Translations under genes and position numbers: made by a program
The notes under the pieces: model-generated
Told to the model about the DNA's origin: nothing
Database searches by the model: none
The model's input: only the letters and a program-made list of their open reading frames with translations
Shown: positions 5,714-62,808 of the stretch, piece after piece
Position numbering within the stretch: the first letter of the stretch is position 1
How the letters are laid out: each line of letters starts with the position of its first letter
NCBI GenBank assembly: GCA_002104945.1
Contig: MCFH01000051.1
Location: forward strand, 310,001 to 374,000
Direction of reading: 5' to 3'
Source of the DNA: Piromyces finnis finn
Taxonomy: Eukaryota; Fungi; Neocallimastigomycota
DNA: 64,000 nucleotides

Positions 5714-5747
5714 ATTGCTCTTATATTTAAGTAAGTTTTTTTTTAAT

Positions 5748-18958: not shown

Positions 18959-21900
18959 ATGAAAGCTTTTAGATTAGGAAAATCAAGAAAAAATAGTAAG
19001 GGACAACTTGGAAAAGATAAATCAATAACATCAACTTCATCTAATGCCTCATTGCGTAGTAATTTAAAACATGATAAAGTTCAATCATATACCTCTACTC
19101 TGTATAACTCCATGAATCGGAGTTTTACTTCCTCAACAAACACTACTAATTCGCCAATAAGATCTAATTCATATACCAATTATTTGGCAAATAGTAATAA
19201 TAACAACAATAATAATAATACTATGAGTCATAGAGAAGGCTCACCAAAATCATTAACTAGAAATGTATCATTGGGAAAAGTACCAGAATTTCGAGTTGGT
19301 GTTAGATTAAGACCAATGCTTGAAACAGAAAAAGATGATTCTGAAAATGAAGAATTAGTATATCTCCTCCCACAAAACAATATTCTATGCATACGGGAAC
19401 CTGGTACTGATCGCTTGCCTGAGATTGATGATGGACCACCACCACCGCCAGGTACTATTGCTCCATCTATGGGTCCATATATAGGGACAGATCCATTTAA
19501 TTATGTTTTTGGCGCAAAGAATAACCAAGAAGATGTCTATATGCAAAGTGTACATCCATTAGTTGAACATTTCCATAAAGGTAAAAACTCTTTAGTTCTT
19601 GCATATGGTCAAATGGGTTCAGGTAAAACATATACCATTGGTTTTCAACCTGAAGATTATAATTTAGAGAATTTTCAACCTGATAAAATTGGAAAGGAGT
19701 TAGGTTTTGTTCCAAGAGCCTTTCAAGAAACTCTTTCTTATATGCATCATTTAAAAAGTCAAGGACGTTCTGTAAATCTTCTTGTAACATTTATAGCAAT
19801 TTCTTGTGAAGATATAGCGGATTTATTAGGGGAGTCTATTACTAGATACAAAAGACCTCCATCTCCTGGTCCAAAAATGCATTCCCCAAACGATAAGCGC
19901 GAGACAACTCCACAACCTAAAACAATTACTGTTCATGATCGTGGAAAACAAGGTACTTATCTTAAAGGTGCTAAATACGAACGAATAGAAAGTATGGAAC
20001 GTTTAGCTGAATTGTTATACCGTGGTACTACTTTTCGTCGTATTGTCTTTGGCCCAGATTCAGAAAATCTTTCACACGCTATACTCTCATTTCATTTAGA
20101 ACAAGAAAATCCTAAAAATAATAAAGATAAGATTTATTCTAAACTTAATTTTGTTGATCTTTCTTGTACTGAAAAGATTGATAAAGTTGAAGCTAGAATG
20201 AATCGTATGGAAACAGGTGTTAATGATAAAAGTTGGTTAGCTCTTTCAAAAGTTATTAATCTTTTGACTGGTCGTCCAAAAGGTTATATACCATACCGTG
20301 ATTCCAAGTTAACTCAATTTCTTCAAGATTCTTTAAGTGGTGATGCAATTGTTTTCTTTCTTTCATGTTTAGCTCCGACTGCTTGTGATGAAAGTAAGAG
20401 CGTTTTGAAATATATGATTCGATCAACCAATATTGATCAACGTCAAACGGTTGTTCCACCCAAAATTTTAAAGAGTATTCTTTATAATTTAGAAAATATG
20501 ATGAATGATACACCAACTTCTCCTGTAAATGCTTTAAATCACAGCAGCAATAACAATACTATTAGTCCTAATCAAAGTATAATAAGTCACAATAGTAATA
20601 CAAGCAATAAACAAAAATATGATTCTCCTGCATTAGCTAATATATCTACTACTGTTAATCTTACTTCACCAAATGTAAATGAAGACTTAGCTAGCCCAGG
20701 ACAAGGTGATTCTACATATCCACGTATTTCTAATTCTAATCAAAGTTTAGATAGCAGTTTTTCATCTATGTCAAGACTTGCTGCAAATACTAGTCTTTTA
20801 TTTACAGACGCGGATGCTTCAAACACAATGAGTCCTATATATGAAGAAGAAAATAATCGTGTATCTCAAACCTATAGTAATATCTCAAGTGCTTCAAAAG
20901 GTACTTTGGAAAGACCACCAAGACGTCCAATCAGTAAACGTACTTCAAGTTTGGCTGTTGTAAATAAAGAAGGTAATCTTATTAATCGTACAAATCAACC
21001 TAGTTTACATACTGTTCAAAGTGTTCCTAGTATTAATAGTTTACGTAATAGTTTGATTATGGAACGTAAAAGCAGTGATCGTAAAAGTAGTACAGCTGGA
21101 ATGACTCAAATGCTAGAAGAGCAACTTAAAGCTCTTGATGATATGGAAAAGATGAATAATGAAGATATATCCAATTTAAATAAAAGTAAAGAAATCAAAG
21201 GTCATCATAAAAAGAATAGTGATGGTAAAAAACGTATTAGTTTCCATAAACATTTATTATCTTTCCATAAAGCCGTTTGCACTGAAGTAAATAAACAAGT
21301 AAAAGATAAAGAAATAGAACCAATAGCTAATCAAGTTCCAATTCCAATACCTAAAAGTAATGAAAATATAAATGATTCTCTTGCTGTTATGCTAAATGAA
21401 ATTCGGAATACAATTGGTGAAAAAGCCAGGGCAAATGATGATGTAAATATTAATTCAAATATAAATTCTGCTAATAATGTGGATAAGTTAGTTTACTACC
21501 TTAAAATTCTTCTTCAAAATTATTCCAAGAATGAAGAACAAGTATCAAAATTAACTGCTCTTATTAATAATAGCAATATTATTAATAACAACAATTATCA
21601 CAGCAATCCTTTAAGTGCTGTTGTTTCAAATGTTGAGAACTTAAAATATGAAGAAAGTTCTGGATCTACACCACGTTCAAGTATTGAAATTGTAAATGTT
21701 GCGAATACAACTCCTCCACCAAATCATCCACCACCACCTGTACCAATTGAATCTCCAATTATTAAGCCACCTTCTTATAATAAAAATAATAATAGCAATC
21801 AAATGAGAATAAATACATCTGAATTAGGTTCTGATGATATTAATACTAGTCCAATAAATCGTAACATTAATTCAAAGGAACACAATTTATCTGCATTAGT

Positions 21901-23899
21901 AAGTAAAGGAAAATCTGTATTGAAAAATAGTTTTGTATATAAAAATTCACCCACTGCATCTCCAAATACATATAGTGAAGATATGGTTATGGAAGATATG
22001 GATCAAGCAGAATTAAATAAATATATTACAAATCTTTCTATCCGCTTAAAGAATTCCATTAATGAAGTTAAAGAGGAAAGAGATAAATGCGATCTTTTAC
22101 GCCAAAAGGAAAAGAATTTGGAAAGAAAACTTCGTATTCGTGATAAGGAGTTAGAAGCATTACATATAGAATTGGATGAAAGAATAAATTCATTTAATAA
22201 TGCTGTTAAGGTATTAGTAATGCAATTAGGTATGGCTCAAGAATCTAAAAGTAAAACTCAAGAAGAATTAAGTTCTGTTGAGTATCGTACTATGGAGTTA
22301 GCAAAATCCCTAGAAACTATAAGTGAATTAATGAACGGGGATCGTAAAAATAATCGTAATGCTGAAGATAAGTATCATAATTTTGTAGCCGAATATGAAG
22401 AAGAAATTAATATTTTACAAAGTGAAAAATCTCAAATTATTCATGAAAAAGAATCACTTAAACAACAAAATGCTAATTTGCAATCAAAAATTAATAAATT
22501 GGTTAAAACTTTGAAAAAATTTCAAGTCAATTTAATTGAATCAGAAAAGAGAAATTATTATGATGCAACTGCGAATATGACTAATTTAAAAAACGAGAAC
22601 AATCTTTTAAAGCGTAAAGTAGAAGAACTTAATCAAACAAAAGCCTTTTTGGAAAGCAGTTATCATGATCTTCAAGTGGAATATGAGAAAGTATCTCAAG
22701 CAGCCAATTCATCAAGTTATGAAATGGATGAAGACAATTCAGATCAAATAGAAGAATATAAAAAAGAAATTGAACGCTTGAAGACTAAACTTCGTGAAGA
22801 AGAAGAGGATCATCAAGCCGAAGTTTATAAACTTTTAGATCGTGTTGTTATTGCTGAAAGCAAGCAAGGATCTACTAATTCAAATGTTAATAATTATACT
22901 AAAGAATTAGAGAAAAAATTAGAAATAAGTTATGCTGCTCAAAAAGAATTAAAAGAAAAATTAAAGGCAACAGAAGCTGCTATTAATAAGAAAAGCTTGG
23001 AAAACAAGGAATTAGAGGGTAGATGCTTATCCTTTAAAAAGTCTATTAGCACACTTCAAGATACTGTAAACACCTATGAAAATCATCAAATAAAGCTTTT
23101 AAATACAAATTACAATTTATCATCCCAACTTAATAATAATGGCAAGAAAGGTAAGACTTTAAATACACGCTCTTATTCTGGCTTTAGAACTATAATGCAA
23201 GATATTAAGAAAATGACAGTTACTGAATTACAAGATGAAGTTGTTGAATTGAGACAGGAAGTTGAAAGCATAAATAAGAAAAATTGGGATCTTAAGTTAG
23301 AAGTAGATCGTTATCAATCTGCAAATGAATCTAATCGTCGTACTATTATGCTTTTAATGAAACGTATTAATGGTGAAAAGGGTAATACTAGTAAAAAGGA
23401 TGATGGAAATACTAGTCCTATTGTTGGAGTTGATGAAAGTCGTAGTTCTTCTTTTTCCAAAGATCAAGCTAATTTAAGAAATTCCAATTCATCACTTAAT
23501 TCCAAGCACGAAAGCAATACAACACTTTTAAATAGTGAAACATTTGATGAAGATTATAGTAAATCGTCATCAAAATTACCTGTCTTATCAGAAGTTAATA
23601 ATGAAACATTGCTTAAAGGTGAACGTATTGATGATGAAGATACTACTAATGTTTCTCCATATCTTATTAATAAATCTAATTCATCATCTTCTTCTACAGC
23701 TGTTAATTTACCAATCCACGCTATGCCAAATCATGAAGGTTTTATTGCTAAGGATTCTGAAGCACGTTCTCTTTCTCAAGAGTCTTCATCTTCTGATTTC
23801 TCAATGATTAAGGTGAATGATGAAGTATGCATACGTGAATCCTCACTTTCTACAGAATCAATGAAGTATTCTCAAGATATTAATTATAATGACTATTAA
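18959..23899 (+). CDS. Kinesin-like protein (N-terminal motor, long coiled-coil tail; kinesin-4-like or divergent)
   Basis: FRVGVRLRP, P-loop GQMGSGKT and YIPYRDSKLTQFLQDSL are present, followed by a heptad-rich C-terminal half. 1646 aa, no intron needed. Confidence 0.92.
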   Translation: MKAFRLGKSRKNSKGQLGKDKSITSTSSNASLRSNLKHDKVQSYTSTLYNSMNRSFTSSTNTTNSPIRSNSYTNYLANSNNNNNNNNTMSHREGSPKSLTRNVSLGKVPEFRVGVRLRPMLETEKDDSENEELVYLLPQNNILCIREPGTDRLPEIDDGPPPPPGTIAPSMGPYIGTDPFNYVFGAKNNQEDVYMQSVHPLVEHFHKGKNSLVLAYGQMGSGKTYTIGFQPEDYNLENFQPDKIGKELGFVPRAFQETLSYMHHLKSQGRSVNLLVTFIAISCEDIADLLGESITRYKRPPSPGPKMHSPNDKRETTPQPKTITVHDRGKQGTYLKGAKYERIESMERLAELLYRGTTFRRIVFGPDSENLSHAILSFHLEQENPKNNKDKIYSKLNFVDLSCTEKIDKVEARMNRMETGVNDKSWLALSKVINLLTGRPKGYIPYRDSKLTQFLQDSLSGDAIVFFLSCLAPTACDESKSVLKYMIRSTNIDQRQTVVPPKILKSILYNLENMMNDTPTSPVNALNHSSNNNTISPNQSIISHNSNTSNKQKYDSPALANISTTVNLTSPNVNEDLASPGQGDSTYPRISNSNQSLDSSFSSMSRLAANTSLLFTDADASNTMSPIYEEENNRVSQTYSNISSASKGTLERPPRRPISKRTSSLAVVNKEGNLINRTNQPSLHTVQSVPSINSLRNSLIMERKSSDRKSSTAGMTQMLEEQLKALDDMEKMNNEDISNLNKSKEIKGHHKKNSDGKKRISFHKHLLSFHKAVCTEVNKQVKDKEIEPIANQVPIPIPKSNENINDSLAVMLNEIRNTIGEKARANDDVNINSNINSANNVDKLVYYLKILLQNYSKNEEQVSKLTALINNSNIINNNNYHSNPLSAVVSNVENLKYEESSGSTPRSSIEIVNVANTTPPPNHPPPPVPIESPIIKPPSYNKNNNSNQMRINTSELGSDDINTSPINRNINSKEHNLSALVSKGKSVLKNSFVYKNSPTASPNTYSEDMVMEDMDQAELNKYITNLSIRLKNSINEVKEERDKCDLLRQKEKNLERKLRIRDKELEALHIELDERINSFNNAVKVLVMQLGMAQESKSKTQEELSSVEYRTMELAKSLETISELMNGDRKNNRNAEDKYHNFVAEYEEEINILQSEKSQIIHEKESLKQQNANLQSKINKLVKTLKKFQVNLIESEKRNYYDATANMTNLKNENNLLKRKVEELNQTKAFLESSYHDLQVEYEKVSQAANSSSYEMDEDNSDQIEEYKKEIERLKTKLREEEEDHQAEVYKLLDRVVIAESKQGSTNSNVNNYTKELEKKLEISYAAQKELKEKLKATEAAINKKSLENKELEGRCLSFKKSISTLQDTVNTYENHQIKLLNTNYNLSSQLNNNGKKGKTLNTRSYSGFRTIMQDIKKMTVTELQDEVVELRQEVESINKKNWDLKLEVDRYQSANESNRRTIMLLMKRINGEKGNTSKKDDGNTSPIVGVDESRSSSFSKDQANLRNSNSSLNSKHESNTTLLNSETFDEDYSKSSSKLPVLSEVNNETLLKGERIDDEDTTNVSPYLINKSNSSSSSTAVNLPIHAMPNHEGFIAKDSEARSLSQESSSSDFSMIKVNDEVCIRESSLSTESMKYSQDINYNDY

Positions 23900-36294: not shown

Positions 36295-37844
36295 ATGAAG
36301 ATTTTAATATTCACTGGTTTAATTTTACTTTTTATTAACCTTATTAATGCTGACTACAAGTCACTTGGCATTGATGCTACTGCAAAGCAGGAAATTGAAG
36401 AAAAAATTGCGAAAGAATCTCAACTTCCTGTAATTAATATATCAACTAAAAATAATTCTGAAAAAATAAATTATGAAAGTTATGTTGAAAGTATTGTCGA
36501 TGTGTTTAATGTTGAAGATAAACTTAAATTAAAAGAAAGATCTGAAAGGGTTAAAATAAGAGGCAACTCTACTGGTTACTATGGAATCCCTGAATTAATG
36601 TTAAATAACACTGTTCCATACAAAATTAAATTTGACAAGAAAACTAATTTACTTGGTCTTCATAATGGTGAAAAATTTAAAGAATGGGTTCTTCTTAAAT
36701 CTGAAGATGATGTTATCAAAAATGATATTACTTTTAGAATGGGTAAGGTGATTTTTGGAAAAGACTATTATATTACTGATATTCAATATGTCAAGGTTTA
36801 TGTAAATGATGAATTCAAAGGGATTTACTTACTGAACAAAATGAAGTTGATGAAAGAAAAGTTAATGTAACTCAACCAGAAAAGAATTATAACGGAACCG
36901 ATATTGGTTACTATATTGAAATTGACAATTACTATGATTTAAATCCAGGAAGATATTATATTTATGATTTTGATGGTTTATCGGCCAAAGATATTCGAGG
37001 TGAAGAAAGACAATTTGCTCAAGCTGAATTTGTTTTAAAGAGTGATTTTTATTGTCAAGAACAGTTAGACTTTATTGGAAATTACACTGTAAAAGTTTTC
37101 AATATTATTTATCAAGCTGTTAAAAAAGGGGAATACAAAACTTTTGATGAAAATTATAATCTTGTTAATTCTACTTTTATAAGTGCTGAAGAAACTATTT
37201 CAGCTGTAGTAGATATTGAATCATTTACTAATATGTATCTTCTTTATGAAATTGTTCATGATTATGATGTTGGTGAAGGAAGTTTTTACTTTGCTATCGA
37301 TTTTTCAGAAAATAGTAAAATCAGAAAATTCCAAATGGTTTCTCCATGGGATTTCAATTGGACTTACTTTGATAGTCCAAAAAGATACTGGGCAGCTACT
37401 TTTAGTGAACTTGAATTTGCTAATCGTTTTGGTGATAGATCAAATCCATGGTTTATTTTACTTGGTAAAGAATGGTTCCATTAATTAGTTGCTAAGAAAT
37501 GGGAATCTTATTCTAACTTCATTAAATCTCAAATAATTGAAGAAAAGCAATATATTGATGAAAATAAAGATGATTTTTCATTGGTAGGTGATAAGGTTTT
37601 CGATAATATTGAAGAAGTTAGAAATTGGATTGTTAGAAGATTTGATTGGATGGATGAGGCCTTTGTTTCTGGTAAGAGTGTTATGCTCATTCCAAGTGAA
37701 GAAGAAACCGTTGGTGATGAACCAACTGAAGTTGAAACTACCGAACAAATTAATATTGATTCAGATGATGAAATTGAAGTAACAGCAAGTTATGATGAAG
37801 AAGAAGATTCAACTGATGAATGTAGCTCAGAAGAAGAAAAATAA
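36295..37844 (+). pseudogene. cotH: CotH-family secreted kinase, disrupted by a frameshift (~36830) and an in-frame TAA (37482-37484)
   Basis: Signal peptide, KIRGNST, YKIKF, GIYL(L)TEQNE after frame correction, YYIEID, DYDVG, PWDFNW, NPWF. The three ORF-track pieces join into one colinear CotH sequence with an acidic tail. Confidence 0.88.
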
Positions 37845-45281: not shown

Positions 45282-48200
45282 TTAGTAATCTAATTTAAAA
45301 CGTTCTTTGTTTTTGGATTTGTTTTTTCTTTTTTCTTTTTTTGCTTTTTTCTTATTTTCTACTCCTAAATATATACTGAAAGGTATTGCTTGGCTTATTT
45401 TAATTTCACTATATGCATTTTCTAAAGATGATTTTAATGATTCAAGTTCTTCTTCTAAAAATTCATCTAATTTTTTATTCCATAATTCTTTCTTTTCTAG
45501 CAATATAAAAATATCCCAATCATAATGATTAAACTGGTCACTAATTAAATATCTTGCAATCATTTTTTGAACTGCAATGCAAAAATCTTCTTTCCTAATT
45601 TGATTATCTTTATTAAAATATTCATCTAATATTTTTATTTGTTCTTCTGTTAGTTTTTTATTTGCATCTTCAGAAACATATTTAATTATTTTATTATAAT
45701 TTAATTGTTCTATATAATCATATAAAGTTATTAATTGACTTAATTTTAAATTTAAATGATTAGTATTAATAAATTTTTCAAATTCTTTATTCAATTTAAT
45801 AACACTTTTAGGTAATTGCTTTATTTCTTCCAATAAAAATTCCTCACCATTAATGTTTCTCTTATTATAAAAGTACTGGAAAAGAGATTGTATACAATCT
45901 AAAATTATACTGTAATCAAAGTATTCCATAGAATTAGTGATATTAGCTTTATCTTCTTTTGATAATTCTTCTTCAGATTCAATCTTACTTTTAAAATCAG
46001 ATATGATATTGTAATTTTTAGTAAATCCTTCAAATTTATATGAGATAAATCTTTGTTCTTTTTCATTTTTAAATAATTTTTTTCCATTCAATAAGATATT
46101 TAATAATTCATTTTCTATTGAATCAAAATCAATAATAATGCTATTATGATTAGAAAAGTTTATATCATTATTATCTTTAACGAAGTTTCTATAAGAAAAT
46201 GCATTAATTAAATCATCAAAAGAATCATATATATCGTTCTTTATATTAAGAGAAGAAACTTCATTAGAATTTGCATCTTGAATTACTATTTCTTTTTCAA
46301 TTTGATATGAATAAGATTGTATATAGTCTCCATTAGATTTTTTTGGAACTAAACTTCTTAAAAATTCATTATGGTATGTAATACAGTCTTTGTAATATGT
46401 TGCAATATATTTTCCAAAACCATCTTCAAAAGTATCATTTAAAATGTATGCTAAAACACATTCATCATCAATATATTTTTTTTCTAATTTACCATGACAG
46501 TCAATATTAGTTAAATCGGTATATATTTTTTTCCATCCTTTTTTAAAGTATTTAAATAGTTTTTTCATATAATTATCATCTTTAAGCTCATTCTTTATTT
46601 TTATACTTTTGGCTTCATTTCTTGATATCTTATTAGAATATTTTTCCAATACATATACAATAAATGGATTTATTAATTGGAAAGTTTCTAAGAATTTAAA
46701 TTTATCAATTTCTGCAATGGATGCATTAATGTAAGAACTAATAGCAGGATATTGTTGAGCTTTATTTGGTATTTCAATGAATTGATCATAAAATTTTTCA
46801 TATGAAGGATAATCAGATGCATAAAAATACCTAATTAATGGATAATTTTCTAGATTTAGTTTATTAATATTTGAAGTTTCTTCAATAATAGATTGTATTG
46901 TATCATCATTAATTTCAAGAATTTCCTTACTATTATTGATATACTGTTGATATAATTTTTGGAAATTAGCAATAGTATATTCTACTTTTTTATTGCATTC
47001 AGTTTCAAAGAGCATTCTTTCATGGCTATTTTCCATTTTAAATTCATTATTCGATATTAATATTGCAATATCAGGTAAAATTAAATTTAAAAAGCACTGT
47101 ATTTTATTATCAATTCCTTTTTTATTTAATTCAATATTTAATAATTCCCAAATGTCTTTTAAAATTGAGAAAATCGATTGTTTATCATCATCTTCATAAT
47201 AAAATTTAATTAAATCGTTTTCTTTTAAATATTTTAATTTTTCATCAAAGAGAATACAAGAGTAAAATATAAAACTTAATAATCTATATGTTATATTATT
47301 AATATTTCTTACTTCTTTTGTGGGATTAGTGAAATATATTTTTAATACTCTTTTTAATCCAGGTTTCTGAGTATTTTTTAAGATTTCAACTTCTTTTAAT
47401 AAGTCACTAAATAACTTTCCTGGAATGTTTTTATTTTCTGCTTGTTCATTTAAATTTTCAAATATTCTTAAATGGCCTTCTCTTTTATGTAACCTATGAT
47501 TTGTACCTCCAATTATTTTTTTGCAAAAAGAGCAATTACTAGTGGAGTTTGGTTGAGTACAATTATCAATATAATAAGACTTTCCACAACTGCATATGTA
47601 AACGCCACTTTTTTCCATAGAGGCTTTTTTATTATCAAAATATTCTTTGATTTCCTTAGCTGAATCTATTAATATACTATATTCCGGTTCACCTCCTGGT
47701 ATATAAATATTATTTATTTTATCCATTATTTCTGATGATAAAATATTTGAATAAACAGTATTTGGTTTTGATTGTGAGCATATAAATGCAAATTTATGTG
47801 AATATAATAATATTTCATATTCTGATAATGATAAATTTTGAATATTTGATACTTCCTTGAATAAAGATTCATAACTGTATAAAATTGAAACAATACTTTT
47901 TGAAGTTTCTGATATATTTGATTTATTCACAATATTTTGTAAGAAATGACACAATTTTTGATAATATGCATTATCAAATGGTTTTTTAAGTAGACTTGAA
48001 AATTCCTCATTTATAATTACATCATAAAAATTTAAAATTGATATATTTTTAGATAATTTTATAAGTTCTTTATTAGTTTTAAAATTATCTATTTTGCTTT
48101 CTCTATATAATTGCTTTAGTATTTTATAATTTTCATAAGAACCATTTTGAAGGAAAAGATTATTAAAAGAAAATGGAACTTTTTCAGAAAAATCAAAGTC

Positions 48201-51200
48201 ATCAATAAATAATTCTTTTTCCTTTATAATTTCAACTAAATTTTTATAATTTTTAATAATTTTATTTAGCACTCTTAATATATATATTTTTATAACTTTC
48301 CTTAACTTAGTTGAATTATCTAAAAATTCTAATATACTTTCCATGTTTATGTCGCTTAAATCATCATTATTCATAAATATTTTACATAAATGATAGCAGT
48401 AGCATTTTATATATGAAATACAATATAATATTTTTAATTTATTATCTTTGGTGATTTTACAATTATAATTCTCAATAATAGAAATAAAGCTTCTAAATAT
48501 AATAAAAGATTGTTTTAATATTTTTTCTTCATCGTTATCTTTTAAATTAAAGTATTTTATAATGGACTCATCAAATAAATATATCAAAACCTCATTTAAT
48601 ATATCACTTTCAGTTTTATTTAAAAACATAATAATTGGATTGTACTTATCATTTTCTATTTGTGATATGAAATTTACACCCATATTTTCATCTTCATTGC
48701 TGTAATAATTATTGATATAATTATTGATATATTCTTCTTCATCACTACTATAGTTATAAATTTTTTCTTCCTCATCACTACTATAAATAATAATACTTTC
48801 TTCATAGCTACTATTATCGCTTTCATTATTTTCATTTAGAGTATATAAATTTGAGGATATCTTATTAATTATATTTAAATTATATTTTTTAAATATTATT
48901 TCAAATATTTTTTTAGATTTAATAATAAGATCATTATCCGAACAAATAATATTTAACATAATTAACATATAACTTTCATTATTAGATATATTTATCTTAT
49001 TATTTAGCAATTTTACTTTTAAATTCAAACAATTATTAATAGATAATTTTTCATTTAAAAACTCAAATTCTTTGATAATTGGATTTTTAATGTCTTTATT
49101 GTTGGATAATTCTATGTTTGCATTATTTAAATATTCTGGTAATAAATATATTTCATTTTCATTTCTTAAAAAGTCTAAATAAATTTTTAAATTTTCTTTC
49201 AATGGTATTTTTGATTTACTAAATTCTTCCTTTACTTCGATTAAATCTCTTAAGTACAATATTTGTTTCAATGTTAAACCCAAATCAATATTTACTTTAA
49301 TTACAGTGTTAGAAATAATTTTAATTTCTTCAAAAAGTTCATTAAATAATTCATTTGATATAACATTAAAATTGTATTTGTAATTAAGAATGCAATAAAC
49401 TAATGATTCGTACAAATTGAATATTATATCATTTCCGATAGAAATCTTCTTATTAACTTTCATAAATGTATTATCTAATATTTTTAAAATAAACATTTCT
49501 GTAAAATCTATAAAAATAGAATCCATAAAGTTAATAAAATCAACTATAATGATAATATATTTTTGGAATGTTTCGATAAATAAGATAAATTTTGTTAATT
49601 TTTCATATAATAATTTAATATCATTATCACTATATTCTTCATAATCATCTTCATTTTCATTTTCATTATTAATCATTTCAAATAATTGACTTAGTGTATC
49701 AAAGAAACGTAATATTTTCTTATTTTTAAATTTATTATTTGATTTTGATAAATAGTATATAATATAATCTTCAAATAAAATTTGAAGTAATTTCTTTCTA
49801 TCAAGTATATTTAATTTCTTTTTATTGTAATATAAAAATATATCCGCAAAGTATTGTTCATCAAACTTTCTTTTAATATTCATTTCAAATATGTATTTTT
49901 CCTTCTTATAGTCATCTTCACTTTTAGTAATATATAAATTTTCATTTTTGAAATAATCATTTTTTAAGTTTTCAACAATGTATTTGTTAATTTTATCAAA
50001 TACAGGAATAATACATGGGTATGAAATCCCTAAAATTAAATCAATATTAGTTACTTGAGATATGGTTTGAGAAGTTAAGGTAGATTCTTCCTTTAATTTT
50101 TTAATATTTTCTTGATAAATTTTTCCAAAATATTTATTTTTCATACATTTATTAGTAGATAATAATGTAGAAAATATATTAAGATTTTCTAATTGGATTA
50201 AAGAACAAATTATAGCATTCTTATAAATATTTTTCATATGCTTAATAAGAACTGAAATAAAATCAATATCATTTTCTTCAAAATTATATTTTTCAAATAC
50301 TTCCATAATTATATTATTATGAATGGAATTAATTTTGTTTAAGACTAGTGAAAAAATATTTCCCATTAATACTTTATTTCCAATAATTAAATCACATACT
50401 TTATTTATATATTCTTCTTTTGAGATATCAGTAAAATTAATTTTATCATTATAATGGATAAAAGTAAATGAATGATATAGTTCATTTTTAAATTCTTCAT
50501 CCAAGTCTATCAAAGTTTTATTTTTAAATAATTCATTTTTGGAAGCACAGATAATATCGTTTAGGTTTGTTATTTTTCCATTCAAGTTATCAATGAAAAA
50601 TTGTTGCCAATTTGTTAAATGTGATATTAAGTATTCATTTTGTATTCTATCTTCTTCATTTTCAATATTATTTTCATTATTTATTGTAATTCTTTTGATA
50701 TGAATAATTAAAATAATTGGTTTTAATTCATTTTCATTTTTGGATGATTCAATATTTTCTATTAAGTAATTAACATGATTTAGATGTTTACATTCATAGA
50801 CATCAAAATGAATAATGCATAGATTATAGTTATTATTGTTGTAATATTCAATAATACATTCTTCAATATCACTTTCTGAACTATACTGACTAATAAAAAC
50901 ATTATTCGTATTTTCTTTTGTAAAAAGTCCATATTTTTCATTTTCAATATTATTTACTTCAAATGCAGAATCTAAAATATTAGAAAAAGTGTAAATAATA
51001 TGTTTATTAATATTAATTTTTTCCAAATAATATTTAATATTTTGATGTTGTTTTGAAGATTCGAGATAAATGTTTAATATCTTTTGATATTTATTTTTAT
51101 GCTGTTTTCCATATTCAGAATATTTAAAAAAGAATATTATATCTTGTGAAAATGTTGGAACAATTTTATGATATATTTTATCTTCTAGTGTTTCTTTTAA

Positions 51201-54200
51201 TTTATCATCATATATTATATTATTTGTAATTAGTTTCGATTTAATAATATCATTATAATTATTTCTTCTTCTAATTTCATTATTATTTGTCTTATTATTT
51301 ATTAACATTTGATAGATAATACCACAAATTTCTTCTAAATCACAATTAACTAATTCTGATTTTAAATCAATTTTTAATAAATTATTCTTTTTATTACAGA
51401 ATTTATTTATGTCATTAAAAATGTTGTTTGTTAAATTTATTGCTTTAGAATCTAGTAAATTTTCGAATGAAATTATATGTTTTTCAAATCTATTAATAAA
51501 TGGAGGATCTTGTTCATTAATTTCTTTCTTATCTAAAAGAACAATACATCTGAAGTTGTCATTGACTTTATAATTTTGTGTATTGGAATTTCCTAACGCA
51601 ATTCTTGCATAATTGCTATTTCCGACTTTTCTGAAATTTTGATTAAAAAGGTCATATAACGATGGATACATGCTAGATAAGTTCTTTAATACCATTACAG
51701 TATCTTCATTCATAGAAATTTGTACCTTATTTAAAATTTTCGCACTATAATATCCTTTTAATGTATCTTCATCAAAATCACTACCATAATAAAATACATA
51801 ATTTTTACATAATTCTTGTATAATTAATGTAATTAGATATTGACTAATCGAACTTTTTGTTACAATTAAAAGATATCTACTATCTGAATCCTTTATATTA
51901 TTAAGGACACAGTTCATTACATCATATTTACTTATATCGTTAACATTTTGATATAAAGTTTTAAACATTTCTTTAAATTTTTCAATAGAATAATCTAAAC
52001 CACCAAAGTTTCTTTCAATACTTTCCATTAAAATATCATCAATTATGCACTTTTCCGTTGGGAATTTATTTTGAATGAATAATTTTGATAAGATTTTTAT
52101 TAAATGGTAAAAATCTCTAGTACCATGAAATTCTTTAATATTCTTATTGGGTAATTTAAAATTAGTTTTATTATTATTTTTAAATTTTAGTGAATTATTT
52201 TTCAATCCTTCCTTATAATTATAATAAGATGATGATAAATATTCATAATAGATTTTATAATCTTGTACTAATTTTGGATCATAGGATTTAGCAATAGCTA
52301 AAGCTGTATCAATTAAATCTTGTTCATCAGGTTCAGGAATTGAAAGATAGATTCCTCTATTCATTTTAGATGCATCGAATGGCCAATTTGAAATACCAAT
52401 GAATGCTATTTTTCTTTCATTATCATCATATTCTAATTGTGAATGTATTACTTTTAGTGGATTATTTTTGGATACTTCCGCAAGTCCCATCTCGTCAAAA
52501 TAAATTGCTGATATAATTTCATTAGAAGTATTTTTTTCCAGTGACTTTCTTGCTTTTTCAAATATTTTCAAAATACCTTGTGAAGTACTTGTACGTGAGC
52601 CTTGATAAGATTTTGTGTATACCTTTGGGAACTCTCTAAAAAATTCATGAGATGAATTTTTTCCATTCATTGATTTAAAAATTAATTGTGCACTTAATGA
52701 TTTACTGCAACCAGGTTTTCCTATTATAAATAAAGGTATCTTTGTGTTTAAACAAACGAAGATAGCAAACAAGTTTTCTAATAAAGCTTTATTTCTAGCA
52801 ATACCTTTATCCAATTTTACAGCAGTTGCAATTTCATTTTCTATTTTCTTTGGAATATCTTCAAATTTAATTTCATTTTTAAATGATCTTTCCATTTTTT
52901 TTATAAATATTATTCTTTTATTTTTATCAAACAATCTTATATAATAACATAGGTATATACTTAAATTTAAGGAATAAATGTATCTTTTTTCATCATCTAA
53001 CATTTCTTTAAAATTTTTAATTATAAATTTATTTTTTAATAATTTATTACAAAACCATTCAAATAGAATACTTAATCTTCTAATTTCTCTTAAACTAACT
53101 GATGAAATATCAAAATTATCTCTTATATATTTATGAGCTTCAAAAATTGAATCTTCTGCAATTGTATGTATTTTATTTAAAATATACCTATTTTTAATAT
53201 TTCTTTGAAGAAATTCATAGGTGATATTTGATATATACTTTCTAATATCTTTATCATTTGGTGAACCAAAATCAAAAACAAAATTAAGAAGAGAATGAGG
53301 TAAAGGATTAACACTGTAAACAAGATTACTCACAATATATTTTTCATCTAATAACCCAGGAATTTCTCTTTTACTAACATCTACTCTATAAGGATTGCAT
53401 GCAGCAATAAATTTTACGTTTTCTCTGATACTTTCTCCCTTACAAGAATGCTTTAACATAATTTCAGTAATTAAACATAATGAATTACAAGTATTTATTT
53501 CATCAAAAAATATCCAAACCATATCCGTTTTCTCCTCATTATCTTTATTTTTACTAATATCATTAAATAAATTGTTATTTCTTATGAATTGAATAATATC
53601 ATCGTCTTCTGTACCAGCATGAATATTTAATGTATACATTGGAATAGATTTTAAACTTGCTATTATTTTTATTAAAGATGTTTTTCCACAGCCTGTTTCG
53701 CCCATTAAAACTACTGGAATATCAGTTCTAAGAAATAAAGATATTAAGATTAATTTCATAAAATTATCAGCTGTAAATACATAAGATTTTACAATATCAC
53801 TTAAATTTTCTAATTTTTTCTTATTAAATTCTCTTGGGCTTTCTTTATCCATTTCATCAATTGGGTTTAAAAGATTTAAAACTTTTTTAAGTTCAATTAA
53901 AAAATCTCTTGGTTTTAAATTATTATAATCAATAAGATTTCCTCTTTTGGTGGTATAATCAAGGTGATAAACAGCCATTAAATGACCAACTTCATTATCA
54001 TCTCTTTGGTTATTATTAGTAGTCTTTATAATAGAAACAGATTGACCGTCTTCATTGATTAACACTAAGCTTGGTCTTATTTTTTCAAATTGAAATATTT
54101 TTTTGTTTGTTAAATATAATGCAGCCTTTTCCTTTGCATCTTCAATTTTAATATCTCCTTTTTGTTGATTGTGGGTTAATTCTTGATCTTTAATAATATC

Positions 54201-57200
54201 ATTATATGTAGATGTTATGAATTGTTCTATTACTTTAGTCAATGAATCAACAAAAAATTTTCTAAAAGTATATAAATATGGATTGTTAAAAATACGATTA
54301 TAATCAAATAACTGATCAATATTTAAATGATAAGATTTAGAAAGAAGTATTAATTGTTCAGCAAGTATATTAATGAAAGACTGAACTTGATAATAATTTG
54401 GTTCTTTTCTTAAATATGAAAAAATAATATTGGAGCATTCTTTATTACTCATCTGTTTTATTTTAATACTTTGTGGTGTTTTGTTATTTATATTTGGAAT
54501 ATATATATCATATTTATTAATATTATTAATATTATTTAAATAATTACAAACAATTTGAATATTTTGTTCTATTCTTGAAGAAATGATTAATTGTGGCATA
54601 GATTTAGAAGTTATGTGTATATTCTGGAAAAATGATAATATTGGAAACAATACTTTAAAATCTATATTACCATTTGGGATTTCGACTTTAATTACTATTT
54701 CACTACTATAATAAAATTTTCTTTCATTAACAGAATAACATTTTAATATTAAAAATTCATACAAAAATTCCCTTAATACTTCTAATTGTTCACTGTAATA
54801 TAAATCTATATGTAATGCAATTCTTTGACCACTATATTTTAATAATCTATTAATAATGTCCTCTTTATTTATATTATCACCTAAAGGGAAATAAACATAT
54901 GTATATTTAGGATTTTTATTTTTGAAATCATTTTTAATTAAAGTGGACTTTCCTAAACCGGAAATACTACTAGAATATACAATTACATTGGAAAACAACC
55001 TTCTTTTCATTAATTTATAATCATAATATTTATGATATGGTAATTTTTTAATTTCTATAATAGCTTCATCTGTTTTATTTCCTTCTGTATAAATAAAAAG
55101 TAAGCACGAAACCATTTTTTTTGGATCACTAGAATAAAGTTCTTTAAGTAATTCGATTAATATGCTTTTCTTTCTACGACTTAAATTTTCAGGCTTAATT
55201 AAAATAAATAAAATATTTTGATCGCATTTAATACATCTATAAAGAAATGATATTATTTCATCTTCAGTTGTATCATTATTACAATATATGACAGTTTGAG
55301 CAATAGGAAATTCACCTGTTAAACTTAATGAACAATGTATTGTATTTTTTTCTATATTTTTTAAAGAACATGAATGACTATAAATACCCCTTTTTTTTTC
55401 ACCATGTTTTATCATTGCTTTTTTAAATATTGTTTCATAACTTTTATTATTAGCTTTAAATAATTTATTTAGATATGTAATATCATCATCAAACATTTGG
55501 TTTAATGATAGTTTATTTTTATTTATTAGAATGTTTGTTTCAAAATTCTTAATTAAATTACCAGTAATATATTTTAAAATATTATCTCTAATTTCATCAT
55601 CTATACTTTTACTTTTATCTTCATTTTCAATTTTGAAAATTTTCAATAAACTATTGTTTCTATTTCTTCTATTATTTTTAATATAATCATATATAAATCT
55701 AAATTGTCTACCATGAACTATTGTACTAATATAGTCTGACTGATATTTATTTTTAATTATATTTTTTGATGATTAAGAATTATATTTAATTCATTAATAA
55801 CTTCGGTCAAAGTTTCATTTTTATCATTATATTTTGATTTTGAAGCAAGAGCATTTCCATTTTTAATATCAATAGTGTATTCAATATCCTCAAAATAACC
55901 CTTTGAAGATATAGTTTTTAATAGCTTTAATATATCTTGTATATTAGTAATAATATTTGCAAATTCATCATAAACCTCGCCCTTTTTTAATAATGCTATT
56001 GTTCTTAATTCTGATAATTCATCATAATTTTTTATAACATATTTACCATTATTTTTATAAGAAACTTCACATTTATATTCTGGATAATTATTTTTTAAAT
56101 CTATTTTACTATCATTATAAATACTTTTTATATGAGCTTTATTTAATTCATTTGGATTCAAATGATTTGTAAATAATTCGTTAAAATCAGAAAACTTTCC
56201 ACTAGAATTCTCAAATTTAAGTCCAATATCATGATAATGTGAATTGGATTTTATAATATCAATAAATATATCTAAAAACTCTTTTTCACTTTTTTTTTAC
56301 TTTTTTTTGTTAATTCTTTTTGGAATTCAATACAAGTTTCTAATTGATCAATATCATTATATGTTAAATAATTATCTTCAGAATCATCAATAAATTCACC
56401 CATGGAATGAACATCACATATTTGTTTATCTTTTATAAATTCCATTAATTTTGGTTCTTCATACATCTTGTCCATCACTTCAAGTGCTATTATACTATCA
56501 TTGGAATTTAAATCCAATATATTTAAATTTAATAAATTCAAGGAATCATTTATTTTTATTAAATCATATAATGATGAATAATTTTCTAAATTAGTTTTGT
56601 TTTCTCTAAATATTGCTCTTAAATTTTCACCATTTAATTTGAAATCTTCCAAAAGTAAAATAATATTTTCATAATAACGAATATTACTATCTTTATTTTT
56701 TAAAAGTGACAGTTTTTCAATAACTCTATTTTCTTGAGTTTTCTCTATATCAAGAATATCAAGTAAAATATTTACTTCTTTCTCTACTTCGCTTTTTTCT
56801 ATATCTTTAATAATACTTTCTAATAAATCTAATTTTATTTTATTTTCAGTTTTTGAATTGAATAACACTTTTAAATTTAGAAATTCATTTTTTGTTTCTT
56901 CAAAAATGAAAATTTCATCATTATAACCTTCAAACTCTTTCTTTTTGATTTCATTAATTATAATAAATATTTTTGAGTTTTTGAATTTTGTAATTTGATG
57001 AGCTTCATGATATATATTTTTAAAATTGTATATTTCTAATCTTCCATCATCTGGAAAATCACAAATTGGATTATTAATAATTTGCTTTTTCAATTCTTTA
57101 TAATTATCAATTATATCATGTTTTTCATTTGGATAATAATTTGAAAAAACATTAATAATTTCATCAATTTCTCTACTCTTAGTAATACAATAATTCATTG

Positions 57201-59910
57201 TATTAACAGTTCTTTCATAGAGAGTAGTTATATTTTCTATATCCCCAAATGACAATATTTGAAATCTATCTTGTAATAAATTCCTATTTTTATCGATTTC
57301 TTTTTCATAGAGATTATACATTGATTCTATTTGATTCATACAAAATTCTAAATTTCTCAATTTTTTAATAATATTATTAACAACTTCTCTAGTTTTCTTA
57401 ATATAAGAAACATTTATAAAATTCTTATTATCTTTTTGTAAATCATTTAATTTAATAATATTTTGTAACAATTCTAATTCATCAGTTAAACCAACATTAA
57501 AAACATCTTCCTCTTTAATTACTTTGCTTTCTAACTTTTCTATAATTTTTATTTTAATCTTTTCTGATTTAGTTTGTTTCAAAGTTTCTATTACCTTATT
57601 ATCGGACATATCATTGATATTTATAATCAACTTTTCACATAAGCTTTCACTTATATCATCTGAAAAGTTATCTATAATAAATAAAAATAAATGATTTACT
57701 TCACGTTCATTTAAAACATTTTTAGTATTTTTTATAATACTTTTAGCACAATAATCCCTATTATCAGAAACTAATTTATATAAAGTATATATAATAATTT
57801 CAATCTCACAGAATTCCATACCATTTCTTTCCAAATCTTTCCCAAAAATATCTACTAGATTTTTAATGATATCTTCACTTTGTCTTGGAATTGATTCAAT
57901 ATTAAAAATTTTATATAATTTTGTTAAATGATTGTACGTTTTAGCATTCTTTACTAAAGATGAAATAAAAACATTATAATTTTTATTAAATTGTTTTTTA
58001 TAATCATATGGATCATTAATATTGCCAATAAATTTTTTACAGAAATCTTCATTAATTTCATCTAAATTAATAAATTTTATAAGAGAAGCAATTCTGGGAT
58101 CACTCTTATGTTCTTTATATGATACTTTAACATCTTCTTGTAAATAATTAAGTATTTCTATATTATTCCATTTATGTTTTTCAATTAATGATTTTCCTAA
58201 ATCATGAAGTGCATTATATACTTTTTCTAAAATCTTTTTAAATAATGGAATATTCGTATCGTCATATTTTAATATAATATTTTTTAATTCATTTAATTTA
58301 TTATAATCTTCCTCCTTTGTTTTCAATACATTAATTAGCATTAAAAATTTTCTTTCGATAGTATCATAGTCACTCTTTTCCAGTTGTACATTCATTTCAA
58401 TTAATTCATTAATAAACGATTCTAATAATTTAATATTAGTTTTACCATCTAATTCTGGTATTTTATCGAATTTTATTTTTACACACTTATTTATAATATC
58501 CTTTTTTACAGAACAGAAGAACGAAATATATTCATTACTATTAGAAGCTAAGATCAATACATCATTTATTGAGGTTTCTTCTTTATTAGCTTTTTCATAG
58601 ATCATTTTTAAATTTTCACATTTTAAATTCGAAAATATATTTTTATTCTTTCTAATAAAATTCAAAATTTCTTTCTTCTTTTGTATTTTAACGTAAATGT
58701 CATTAAAATTCTTTATATGATAAATTTGATTATATATTAATAAAAAGAAGAGTATGTTTTCGCGATTAATATCATCACTATTATATAAATCGAATTTATC
58801 TATAATCTTTTTATAAGGATTTATATTTATATTTATATCTTTTCTTATTCTAATTTCATTTTTTTTTATCAAACTTGATAAAATATTATTTAATAATTCT
58901 TTTACTTCTTTTGATAAATTATTAATAGAGATTTCATTATATAATAAAGTTTCAATATAAATTAATACATATTCAAAATCTATTTTTTTCTGATCAATAA
59001 TGGTAGCTTTACTTTCTTCCAATAAATATAGAACTAAAAGATCCAATTTTTCTCTAATCAAATACTCTTTATAAATAATAAATTTCTGCATATTTGAAAG
59101 ACCATACTTATTTATTATAAAATTCTTGGATTCATTATTATTCTTAAATTTATTACACATTTTTTTATTATTCCTTTATTTTATCAATAACTATATAAGA
59201 CATTGAATAAACAAATTTTTGTTGATACCTTTTTATACTTATACTTGACTTTGATTGGAATATTTCTTTATTATAGTCAAACTCAATTTTAATCCAATCT
59301 TCATCATTTTCCAATTCAATATTTGCTATAAATAAAAAAATACTTTTATCTTTAAAAGAATTATTAAATTCATCAACCTTCAATATCGATTCACTTTTAT
59401 TTCTCATAATTTTATTATTTTTAGACGAAATTAGTACCAAATCTTGTTTCAAAATTTTAATATTATTTTTTGATTTTTCTGATATAATATTAAAATTATT
59501 AAATTTCAAATCTTCGGAGCCAGAAATAACTAAATATATTGTTGTGTTTTGAATATCTTTTTCTTTCTCTTTTCTTATATCTTCTTCTTCGTCTCCACTT
59601 GATTTTTCTACATGATTTTCACCATTATTTGAAAATTGATTATCAAGATTACCTGATTTAGTATAATCCTTATCAATATTATGTATCTGATCATTATCTT
59701 GATAATATGAAGAACTTCCATTTTGAGATGTCAAATCAGAATTGTTAGAGTTATTACTATAACCGTTAATGAATCTCGAATTATAGCATGTTCGCTCGTC
59801 TAAATAGCTGTTTTCACTTTCACTTGAATTTCTCCCCAAATATCATCTTCACTATCGCTTACATCTATAATGTCATATATGTTATTGTCACTATATTTGC
59901 CATAATCCAT
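45282..59910 (-). CDS. Giant RNF213/mysterin-like AAA+ ATPase with RZ zinc finger (~4876 aa after correcting four 1-nt homopolymer frameshifts; as written the gene is broken)
   Basis: SSISGLGKST, GETGCGKT (53679-53702) with IFFDEINT, and GKPGCSKS (52698-52721) with YFDEMGLAE occur in RNF213 order and spacing. RZ finger at 47496-47600. ATG at 59910; ORF pieces 59839, 59160, 56161 and 55646 join by +1/-1/+1/+1 nt changes. Confidence 0.85.
47496..47600 (-). other. RZ-type zinc finger (RNF213/ZNFX1 family) coding segment
   Basis: YICSCGKSYYIDNCTQPNSTSNCSFCKKIIGGTNH aligns without gaps to human RNF213 CPNGHPCSVGECGRPMEQSICIDCHAPIGGIDH (recalled). Confidence 0.85.
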
Positions 59911-60573: not shown

Positions 60574-61293
60574 TTATTAGAGATAGTTATTTTTTATTTA
60601 CTTTATTTTATATTTTATATGGTCACATGGCCGTATATATGATATGGGTTGATTTTATGTTAATTTTATGTTATTTTATGTTAATTTTATGTAGAAAGAA
60701 TTTAACACGTGTATATCTTATTTTTATGTATTAAATTACCATTTTTATAATTATTTCTAAACTTAAAATGTGGTACATGCATTTTTTTTTTTTTTTTTTT
60801 TGGTTTTACCACATTTATATGGTTAAGCAAAAAAATTTTTAAAAAAATTTTATACTTGATCATTTTATAATTTTTTATCAAAAAAAAAAACTTTAAATGT
60901 ATATTACACATTTTCTAATTATAATAATTATTACATTATAGCTAAGAAAAAAAAAAGTATATAAATAATGAAAATTTCTTTCAAAATATTTTAAAATACA
61001 TCAAATTATTAGTTTATTTGCTTATTTATATTTTATTATAAATAAACAATAAAAAAACAATTCTTTCTTATATTTTTTATCACTTTTAAAAAGGTTTTAA
61101 TTATTTTAAAATTATTCAAATAATTTTTGGTTTCATTTTAAATAAAAAGAAATCAAATAAATTTTATATTCTAATATAACTTAAAATAAAAAAAAAAATC
61201 ATTTTGTTAATCCTATTTTGATTTTGATTTTGATTTTGATTTATATTTCGATTTTAATTTTGATTTTAATTTTGATTTTTGAAAATAATTAAA

Positions 61294-62808
61294 ATGATGG
61301 CTACTATCGCTACTATCGATAATAATAATCTTTCATACACCGAAAATGGTGCTATTGGTTACAAAACTTCTGGAAAAGATTTATTGGATATTAATTTTGC
61401 TATCTCTTCCATGAGAAATATGGATGAAAGTCAAATCATAGAAAAATATATTAAGGCTTTTAATGAAGAAAATATGTTAGCTGTTAAATGGTTGTTTTAT
61501 GCTAGAGATTGTAGAAGCGGTGTTGGTGAAAGAAGACTTTTCAGAATTTGTTTAGATTATTTAGAAAAAAATCATCCAGAAATTGTTCGTGCTTTATTAA
61601 GTTTGATTCCTGAATATGGTCGTTGGGATGATTTATTTGCTTTATTAAAAGGTCAATTAAAATCTGAAGTTTTCAAAGTTATCAAGGATCAACTCGAAGA
61701 AGATAAAAAGAATATGAGTGAAAACAAACCTATTTCACTTTGCGCTAAATGGATGCCTTCCATAAATACCTCTTCAAAAACAACTAGACAATTGGCAAGA
61801 TTACTAATTAATGAATTTAAATATAATGATAAGAAATATAGAAAGATGCTTTCTCAAATGAGATCATTCTTAAAGGTAGTGGAAGTTTCAATGAGCGCAA
61901 AGAAATGGAGTGAAATCAATTATTCTGCTGTTCCTTCAAGAGCAAATCTCATTTATAATAAGGCTTTCCTCAAAAACGATACTATAAGAAGAAAAGAATT
62001 CCTCGAAAAGTTGAAAAAGGGTGAAACTAAAATTAATTCTCAAGTCTTATTCCCTCATGACATTGTAAATAAGTATGGTTCATCTAACAACGTAGATGAT
62101 ACTTTGGAAGAACTATGGAAAGGATTACCGGATTATGTAAATGGAAATGGAAACACTATTTGTGTTGCTGATAGTTCCGGTAGTATGTGCTGCAATGCTT
62201 CTCCAAACTCATCAGTAACTTGTATGCAAGTTGCATTCTCATTAGCTGTATACTTTGCTGAAAGAAGTTCTGGAAGATATAAAGACAAATATATTACTTT
62301 TAGTTCAAGTCCTAGTCTTGTTGATCTCAGTGGTGCAAATACCTTGAAAGATAAATTAAGAATTATTAATAATCATTGTTATTGTAGTAATACTAATTTG
62401 GAAGCTGTTTTCAATTTGATTTTAGATTTTGCTGTTGATAATCAATTACCTCAAGAAGAACTTCCTTCTAACATTCTTATTCTTTCAGATATGGAATTTG
62501 ATTCAATGGTTGATTTTGGCAGCTATCAACGTAGTCAACGAGAAGCTTTCTTCTCAATAATGAAAAGAAAATTCAAAAGCAAAGGATATTTAATTCCAAG
62601 ATTAGTTTTTTGGAATATCAATAGTCGAACTGGAACTATCCCGGTTAAAGAAAATGAATTAGGGGTAGCATTAGTTAGTGGATTCAGTCCAGCAATCATA
62701 AAAATGGTTCTCAGTAATAAGACCGATCCATTTGAATGTCTCTTAGAACAACTTAATTCCGAAAGATATCAACCAATTGAAGATGCCTTAAAAGATTTAA
62801 TAAAATAA
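61294..62808 (+). CDS. DUF2828 family protein (TROVE-like helical domain plus vWA domain)
   Basis: YTENGA, WLFYARDCRSGVGERRLF, YGRWDDL, SLCAKWMP, YSAVPSRA; MIDAS DSSGS, TNLEAVF, ILSDMEFD; PRLVFWN, LVSGFSP. Intronless; first ATG at 61294. Confidence 0.9.
   Translation: MMATIATIDNNNLSYTENGAIGYKTSGKDLLDINFAISSMRNMDESQIIEKYIKAFNEENMLAVKWLFYARDCRSGVGERRLFRICLDYLEKNHPEIVRALLSLIPEYGRWDDLFALLKGQLKSEVFKVIKDQLEEDKKNMSENKPISLCAKWMPSINTSSKTTRQLARLLINEFKYNDKKYRKMLSQMRSFLKVVEVSMSAKKWSEINYSAVPSRANLIYNKAFLKNDTIRRKEFLEKLKKGETKINSQVLFPHDIVNKYGSSNNVDDTLEELWKGLPDYVNGNGNTICVADSSGSMCCNASPNSSVTCMQVAFSLAVYFAERSSGRYKDKYITFSSSPSLVDLSGANTLKDKLRIINNHCYCSNTNLEAVFNLILDFAVDNQLPQEELPSNILILSDMEFDSMVDFGSYQRSQREAFFSIMKRKFKSKGYLIPRLVFWNINSRTGTIPVKENELGVALVSGFSPAIIKMVLSNKTDPFECLLEQLNSERYQPIEDALKDLIK

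Follow-up and report, generated by a model that had tools for sequence, protein, structure and literature searches.

We propose that a large protein of the anaerobic gut fungus Piromyces finnis finn, encoded in a stretch of 64,000 nucleotides (the window: assembly GCA_002104945.1, contig MCFH01000051.1, positions 310,001-374,000 of the forward strand), belongs to the RNF213 family but lacks a RING, and that its RZ finger would hold zinc by four Cys residues and would transfer ubiquitin with the same Cys/His pair as in RNF213. All nucleotide positions given below are those of the window. To this reading, where the zinc and the catalysis are deduced from the sequence, we assign a probability of about 0.72. 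The ligand exchange, i.e., the presence of Cys two residues after the first Cys of the finger (Cys+2) in place of His four residues after it (His+4), is strongly supported by the comparison of related fingers. From the conservation of the four Cys residues we infer the identity of the four ligands and the binding of zinc, and from the homology with RNF213 and ZNFX1 the catalytic roles of Cys2696 and His2717. Seen directly in the analysis are the homology, the domain order, the residue conservation, the complementarity of Cys+2 and His+4, and the fold as predicted.

In human RNF213, the residues C4505, H4509, C4525 and C4528 of the RZ finger have been assigned to the metal and the residues C4516 and H4537 to catalysis, with the RING being dispensable for the activity and the finger being only partly resolved in the structures (PMC11549300). 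For mouse RNF213 it was found that a finger peptide of residues 4446-4478 binds metal, that the activity is lost on mutating each of the ligands and that an E2~ubiquitin probe maps to the catalytic Cys (PMC12075652). Two preprints on ZNFX1 give the same scheme, with C1849/H1853/C1869/C1872 as the ligands and C1860/H1881 as the catalytic pair. Because the finger is only partly resolved, mutants, metal assays with finger peptides and AlphaFold models are the basis on which roles have been given to the RZ residues of RNF213 and ZNFX1 (PMC11549300, PMC12075652 and the ZNFX1 preprints).

The reading frame and the parts of the finger on which the argument below depends are located as follows.

45282..55646, minus strand: main open reading frame (ORF) of the RNF213-like gene, 3454 residues, open under the standard code.
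47454..47702, minus strand: RZ domain (Pfam PF20173), residues 2649-2731, in which a conserved P-G-G-E-P precedes a helix and a beta-sandwich finger.
47628..47675, minus strand: N-terminal helix predicted by AlphaFold, residues 2658-2673, counterpart of the ubiquitin-binding helix in ZNFX1 and RNF213.
47592-47594, minus strand: C2685, equivalent to human RNF213 C4505.
47586-47588, minus strand: C2687, the extra Cys at +2, new relative to human RNF213.
47580-47582, minus strand: K2689, where human RNF213 has the zinc ligand H4509.
47559-47561, minus strand: C2696, equivalent to the catalytic nucleophile (human C4516, mouse C4462).
47532-47534, minus strand: C2705, equivalent to human C4525.
47523-47525, minus strand: C2708, equivalent to human C4528.
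47496-47498, minus strand: H2717, equivalent to human H4537 (proposed general base), after a G-G pair.
47586..47594, minus strand: proposed first zinc knuckle, C2685-S-C2687 (CxC), with Cys2687 as the proposed replacement ligand.
47523..47534, minus strand: proposed second zinc knuckle, C2705-x-x-C2708, from alignment and conservation.
47472..47483, minus strand: R-x-G-H motif, R2722 to H2725, with a second conserved His eight residues past His2717.

The RZ stretch is the sole Cys/His-dense cluster in the protein. The Pfam model ZnF_RZ-type (PF20173) matches residues 2678-2721 with 40 bits against a cut-off of 27 and with E 3e-10, placing the match far beyond chance. By phmmer the finger aligns without gaps to that of mouse RNF213, with C-P-R-G-H set against C-S-C-G-K and with a single-sequence E of about 1, and a profile of 84 family fingers aligns, again without gaps, to human RNF213 at C-P-N-G-H with E 2.6e-8. 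Five of the six residues that define the RZ finger (C4505, H4509, C4516, C4525, C4528 and H4537) are present, with Lys2689 at the place of H4509. Judged from these matches, the finger is a genuine RZ-type finger. An earlier reading of the window, made from the DNA letters (the sequence-only reading), had already placed the finger in gap-free register to human RNF213 and had noted the retention of the catalytic Cys and His and the absence of the zinc-binding His. All of its residue positions hold on translating the minus-strand ORF 45282-55646; the register is reproduced by phmmer for the mouse protein and by the 84-finger profile for the human protein; C2696 and H2717 are where it had put them, with Lys2689 at the H4509 place; and the residue roles that it had given agree with PMC11549300 and PMC12075652. 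The R-x-G-H motif with H2725 is a conserved feature that it had missed.

The ligand exchange is seen throughout the relatives. In a first set of proteins with the finger region, all 11 have C-x-C and none of the 11 has His at +4. A search with the finger profile in 1.84 billion representative proteins gave 666 matches at E <=0.001, and among the 156 that are aligned at the ligand positions, 145 have Cys+2 only, five have both, five have His+4 only (the canonical form) and one, which is otherwise degenerate, has neither. A separate search with the AAA core gave 2594 proteins at E <=1e-10. Among the 120 matches listed, 83 proteins that were not in the earlier sets have an RZ finger; C-x-C is present in 81 of them, and the other two have a one-residue deletion at this place. 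When the fingers are pooled, giving 250 distinct related RZ fingers, Cys0 (C2685) is conserved in 99.6%, Cys+2 (C2687) in 97.6%, the catalytic Cys (C2696) in 97.2% and the CxxC pair (C2705 and C2708) in 99.2% and 100%, respectively, while the H4537-equivalent (H2717) is His in 89.4% and Tyr in 6%. By contrast, position +4 (Lys2689) varies freely, with Tyr in 39%, Phe in 14% and Leu in 10%. Sorted by the two ligand positions, 248 of the pooled fingers fall into 233 with Cys+2 only, five with His+4 only, nine with both and one with neither, an exclusivity for which Fisher p = 1.6e-6 when related sequences are counted as independent. By this comparison the four-Cys form is a family-wide rule in hundreds of relatives and not a quirk of one gene. 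The suggestion of the sequence-only reading that a new Cys could give a C4 site is thus upheld as to the exchange (Cys+2 in 97.6% and near-exclusive with His+4) and has to be amended as to the novelty, the Cys being not new to this gene and standard in a large family. Nor do the Cys/His positions vary freely among paralogues, an outcome that would have counted against that reading: the catalytic Cys is kept in 97%, the His in 89% and Cys+2 in 97.6%.

The predicted structure is consistent with the alignment. The AlphaFold2 model of residues 2649-2731, built on an 84-sequence alignment, has a mean predicted local distance difference test (pLDDT) value of 88.8. In the numbering of the model, residues 10-25 form a helix, and five strands span 32-36, 42-46, 54-56, 63-67 and 78-80. 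The C-x-C thus falls on the turn joining the first and second strands and the C-x-x-C on that joining the third and fourth, with the catalytic Cys in the loop between the two knuckles. In the helix, Ile2666 is invariant in the close family. The topology of the model is the published RZ topology (PMC11549300), so that the finger is predicted to have the helix-plus-beta-sandwich fold of the RZ domain. In comparisons where both sides are predicted structures, the model matches arthropod RZ domains with a template modelling score (TM) of 0.63 over 75 residues and chordate ZNFX1-like RZ domains with a TM of 0.64 over 77 residues, the next-best fold matches being the Cys4 ribbons S27e, rubredoxin-like and TFIIS.

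Based on our model, one zinc would be held by C2685 and C2687 (CxC) together with C2705 and C2708 (CxxC), the two pairs belonging to two beta-hairpin knuckles. Cys2687 would take the role of human His4509, and the former His position would have become an ordinary packing residue, with Lys in this protein and Tyr or Phe in most of the relatives. Between the knuckles, the loop residue Cys2696 would take over ubiquitin from the E2 as a thioester, and His2717 would serve as general base when the ubiquitin is passed on to the substrate. The preceding helix, with Ile2666, would bind the donor ubiquitin, and the C-terminal domain (CTD) would recruit the E2 as in RNF213. Note that a ubiquitin-binding helix ahead of the finger has been described for ZNFX1 and RNF213 (ZNFX1 preprint), and that in the cited literature the CTD is the E2-binding region in RNF213.

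The protein around the finger is also that of an RNF213 relative, with the following parts.

51447..53804, minus strand: AAA+ core, residues 615-1400, with E 3.6e-95 to solved human RNF213 chains over about 785 aligned residues.
53679..53702, minus strand: first Walker A, residues 649-656 (Lys655), with the Walker B partner D715-E716.
52698..52721, minus strand: second Walker A, residues 976-983 (Lys982), with the Walker B partner D1051-E1052.
45600..47300, minus strand: CTD, homologous to the RNF213 CTD.

The spacing between Walker A and Walker B is 61 in the first module, near the 62 of human K2426-E2488, and 70 in the second, identical to that of human K2775-E2845; with both motifs intact in each of two AAA modules, an RNF213-like, ATP-gated activity is suggested. 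The family profile built from the sequence that follows the finger matches human RNF213 at residues 4612-5164 (of a 5247-residue construct) with E 6e-11; the C-terminal 2054 residues used as one query gave no match in the PDB. For the region between the AAA core and the finger, the match of its profile to RNF213 is confined to the first 300-350 positions, which belong to the AAA5/6 part. No RING pattern was found in any exon and no RING family by Pfam. In the upstream ORFs described below there is no Pfam match to CBM20, for which no dedicated search was made. These homologies make the host protein an RNF213 relative that lacks a RING and carries its finger at the corresponding position.

Two other explanations of the finger deserve to be weighed. 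The first is that the fourth ligand is H2725 of the R-x-G-H motif, or H2720, with Cys2687 having another job, e.g., that of a relay nucleophile as in the RCR-type ligases. There are seven conserved Cys/His residues for one four-ligand site, and the R-x-G-H motif is well conserved (Arg 94%, Gly 90% and His 92%, the His being counted among 211 fingers). Its His has no counterpart in mouse RNF213, and it persists in relatives where the H4537-equivalent is Tyr or Phe. However, positions +2 and +4 belong to one hairpin turn, and in almost all of the 248 fingers either Cys+2 or His+4 is present but not both, as expected from a like-for-like exchange of ligands. Moreover, the canonical finger P0153 (C-x-N-G-H) has both His+4 and the downstream His, so that the downstream His is not tied to the loss of His+4. 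In addition, the CxC and CxxC knuckles already make up a complete zinc-ribbon site, with Cys4 ribbons as the nearest folds outside the RZ family. A fourth ligand outside the four Cys residues is thus unlikely. The R-x-G-H His could be a second base or a structural residue; that it is a ligand is less likely.

The second explanation is that the finger is a structural relic, where the zinc fold has been kept and the ubiquitin transfer lost, the protein being only an ATPase or a scaffold. This would fit with the lack of the RING and of any detectable homology to the E3 shell of RNF213 between the AAA core and the finger, and also with three full-length paralogues of about 4700-4800 residues (P0289, P0297 and P0311) in which the whole finger is missing, a segment of about 120 residues being replaced by at most about 15. 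But the flanks on both sides still align in these paralogues, implying that where the domain is dispensable it has been removed cleanly instead of decaying. Moreover, the catalytic Cys, which is not a ligand, is kept in 97% of the fingers, no less strictly than the zinc ligands, and the His in 89%, whereas a purely structural finger would need neither of them. The Ile of the helix and the homologue of the E2-binding CTD are retained as well, and in RNF213 the activity does not require the RING (PMC11549300). We therefore consider it improbable that the finger has lost its catalytic function. Finally, a chance Cys-rich stretch in an AT-rich genome, for which the single-sequence phmmer E of only about 1 to RNF213 could be taken to speak, has a negligible probability and is ruled out by the Pfam E of 3e-10, the profile E of 2.6e-8 to human RNF213, the hundreds of homologues, and the flanking AAA core and CTD that are homologous to those of RNF213 and stand in the same order.

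It should be noted that several points weigh against a Cys4 finger with RNF213-like catalysis. In the literature searched, neither zinc binding nor thioester formation has been reported for any RZ finger of the CxC type. The searches against solved structures gave weak matches, with a best E of 0.22 by Foldseek and a best Z of 3.4 by VIA; no RNF213 chain is among the Foldseek and VIA-align matches in the PDB, perhaps owing to the incomplete resolution of the finger in those structures. The counts of Cys+2 and His+4 take no account of phylogeny and come from a sample drawn with a profile built on CxC-type fingers, so that the canonical fingers, only five in number, are under-sampled. The residue that we regard as the general base is Tyr in 6% of the relatives, where the R-x-G-H His is retained. 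Lastly, H2725, conserved in 92%, has no part in our model and could join in metal binding or in catalysis.

Compared with the human and mouse RNF213 fingers, five of the six residues of the fungal finger are spaced alike (Cys at 0, the catalytic Cys at +11, CxxC at +20/+23 and G-G-x-x-His at +32), the predicted helix and beta-sandwich are shared, and the finger stands likewise between the middle region and a homologous CTD, downstream of a homologous AAA core. The differences are that RNF213 has C-x3-H where the fungal finger has CxC, giving a presumed Cys4 instead of a Cys3His site, that the fungal finger adds the conserved R-x-G-H eight residues after the catalytic His, and that the fungal host protein lacks the RING. 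With the ZNFX1 finger it shares the domain family, the catalytic pair (C1860/H1881 in ZNFX1) and a preceding helix with a conserved Ile, which in ZNFX1 binds ubiquitin. By contrast, ZNFX1 has the C-x3-H ligands C1849/H1853 and is a superfamily 1 (SF1) helicase with a Miz/Z-RING E2-binding domain, having neither an AAA core nor a CTD of the RNF213 type. The Cys4 zinc ribbons (eS27/S27e, rubredoxin-like and TFIIS) resemble the finger in having two beta-hairpin knuckles with two Cys each, but the matches are weak (Z <=3.4, TM 0.36-0.49), there is no sequence homology, and the ribbons have neither the catalytic Cys/His nor the N-terminal helix. A change in the type of zinc ligand with the fold and the function staying the same is known from RING-HC versus RING-H2 and similar cases. 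There the exchange is in place, whereas in the CxC-type RZ finger the ligand would shift by two residues within the knuckle.

The taxonomic range of the CxC form is known from a handful of named sequences, the carriers being fungi of the Neocallimastigomycota, the ciliate Litonotus pictus (P0087) and the green alga Trebouxia, while one canonical finger match comes from Amoeboaphelidium. The Trebouxia sequence (P0219) is a fragment of 263 residues, named NFX1-type zinc finger protein, in which the end of a HECT domain is followed directly by a CxC-type RZ finger; unless it is an artefact of the gene model, it would unite two thioester-type ligase domains in one protein. Further carriers are a 4510-residue gene on a 204-kb eukaryotic contig and a giant split gene (L004:1-16278, host G+C 57%). 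The latter combines a C3HC4 RING with an AAA core like that of RNF213 (E 3e-85) and, about 420 residues past the RING, a CxC-type RZ finger, from which it follows that the Cys4 finger is not tied to the loss of the RING. A homologue search with P0148, a fragment with RING plus RZ, returned P0148 alone. Many of the AAA-core homologues are about 4800 residues long and lie on contigs of only 14-15 kb, with about one gene each.

The domain is already recognised by the databases, as the CxC-type fingers score up to 65 bits in the Pfam RZ model and several of the proteins are named 'RZ-type domain-containing protein' in UniRef; the difference in ligands, CxC versus C-x3-H, is not described in the literature searched. 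The Cys4 subtype is real and conserved, but both the catalytic domain and the protein family to which it belongs are known already, and it does not represent a novel type of system. The CxC family provides an independent natural test of the published assignment of the RZ residues. That His4509, assigned to zinc, can be exchanged for a Cys two positions off while the catalytic residues stay fixed is as the published assignment predicts. Machines of the RNF213 type are widespread outside animals, usually with a Cys4 finger, and the RING-less relatives in the gut-fungal lineage fit with the dispensability of the RING in human RNF213. Moreover, the CxC fingers offer small and varied sequences for structural work. 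The CxC form occurs in gut fungi, ciliates, a green alga and other lineages, including the RING-bearing RNF213-like giants. Across eukaryotes it may both predate and outnumber the C-x3-H form of the RZ finger known from animals (RNF213, ZNFX1), which would then be derived, and the fingers that have both residues would be living intermediates of the hand-over of the ligand. This history we put forward tentatively, as possible rather than probable.

As regards the gene itself, the window has a G+C content of about 14-31% and is thus very AT-rich. The public annotation at the main ORF is a product of 3404 residues with an RZ-type Pfam match, the start of which lies inside the ORF. The closest named homologues are proteins of Piromyces, Neocallimastix, Anaeromyces and Orpinomyces. 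Upstream there is a further feature that touches on the extent of the gene.

55757..59839, minus strand: three upstream ORFs, aligning by tblastn to the N-terminal 1500 residues of P0001.

P0001 is a relative of 5073 residues that is 64-81% identical to the fungal protein. Since it also aligns to the three upstream ORFs, the latter probably represent additional exons, and the RNF213-like gene would then probably extend to about 59800. The upstream ORFs meet the main ORF over short gaps and one frame change (59160-59225 and 55647-56271, minus strand), which would be short introns or frameshifts. One run contains every sampled word of 46500-48500, where the type of the run is only a guess.

The window also contains other genes. 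An intact copia-type retrotransposon polyprotein with gag, integrase and RVT_2 reverse transcriptase lies at 5715-11198 (plus strand), and a kinesin gene of 1646 residues at 18959-23896 (plus strand). At 36295-36867 (plus strand), a short ORF encodes the beginning of a CotH kinase domain. Finally, a gene for a DUF2828/DUF7788 protein at 61279-62805 (plus strand) stands head-to-head with the RNF213-like gene.

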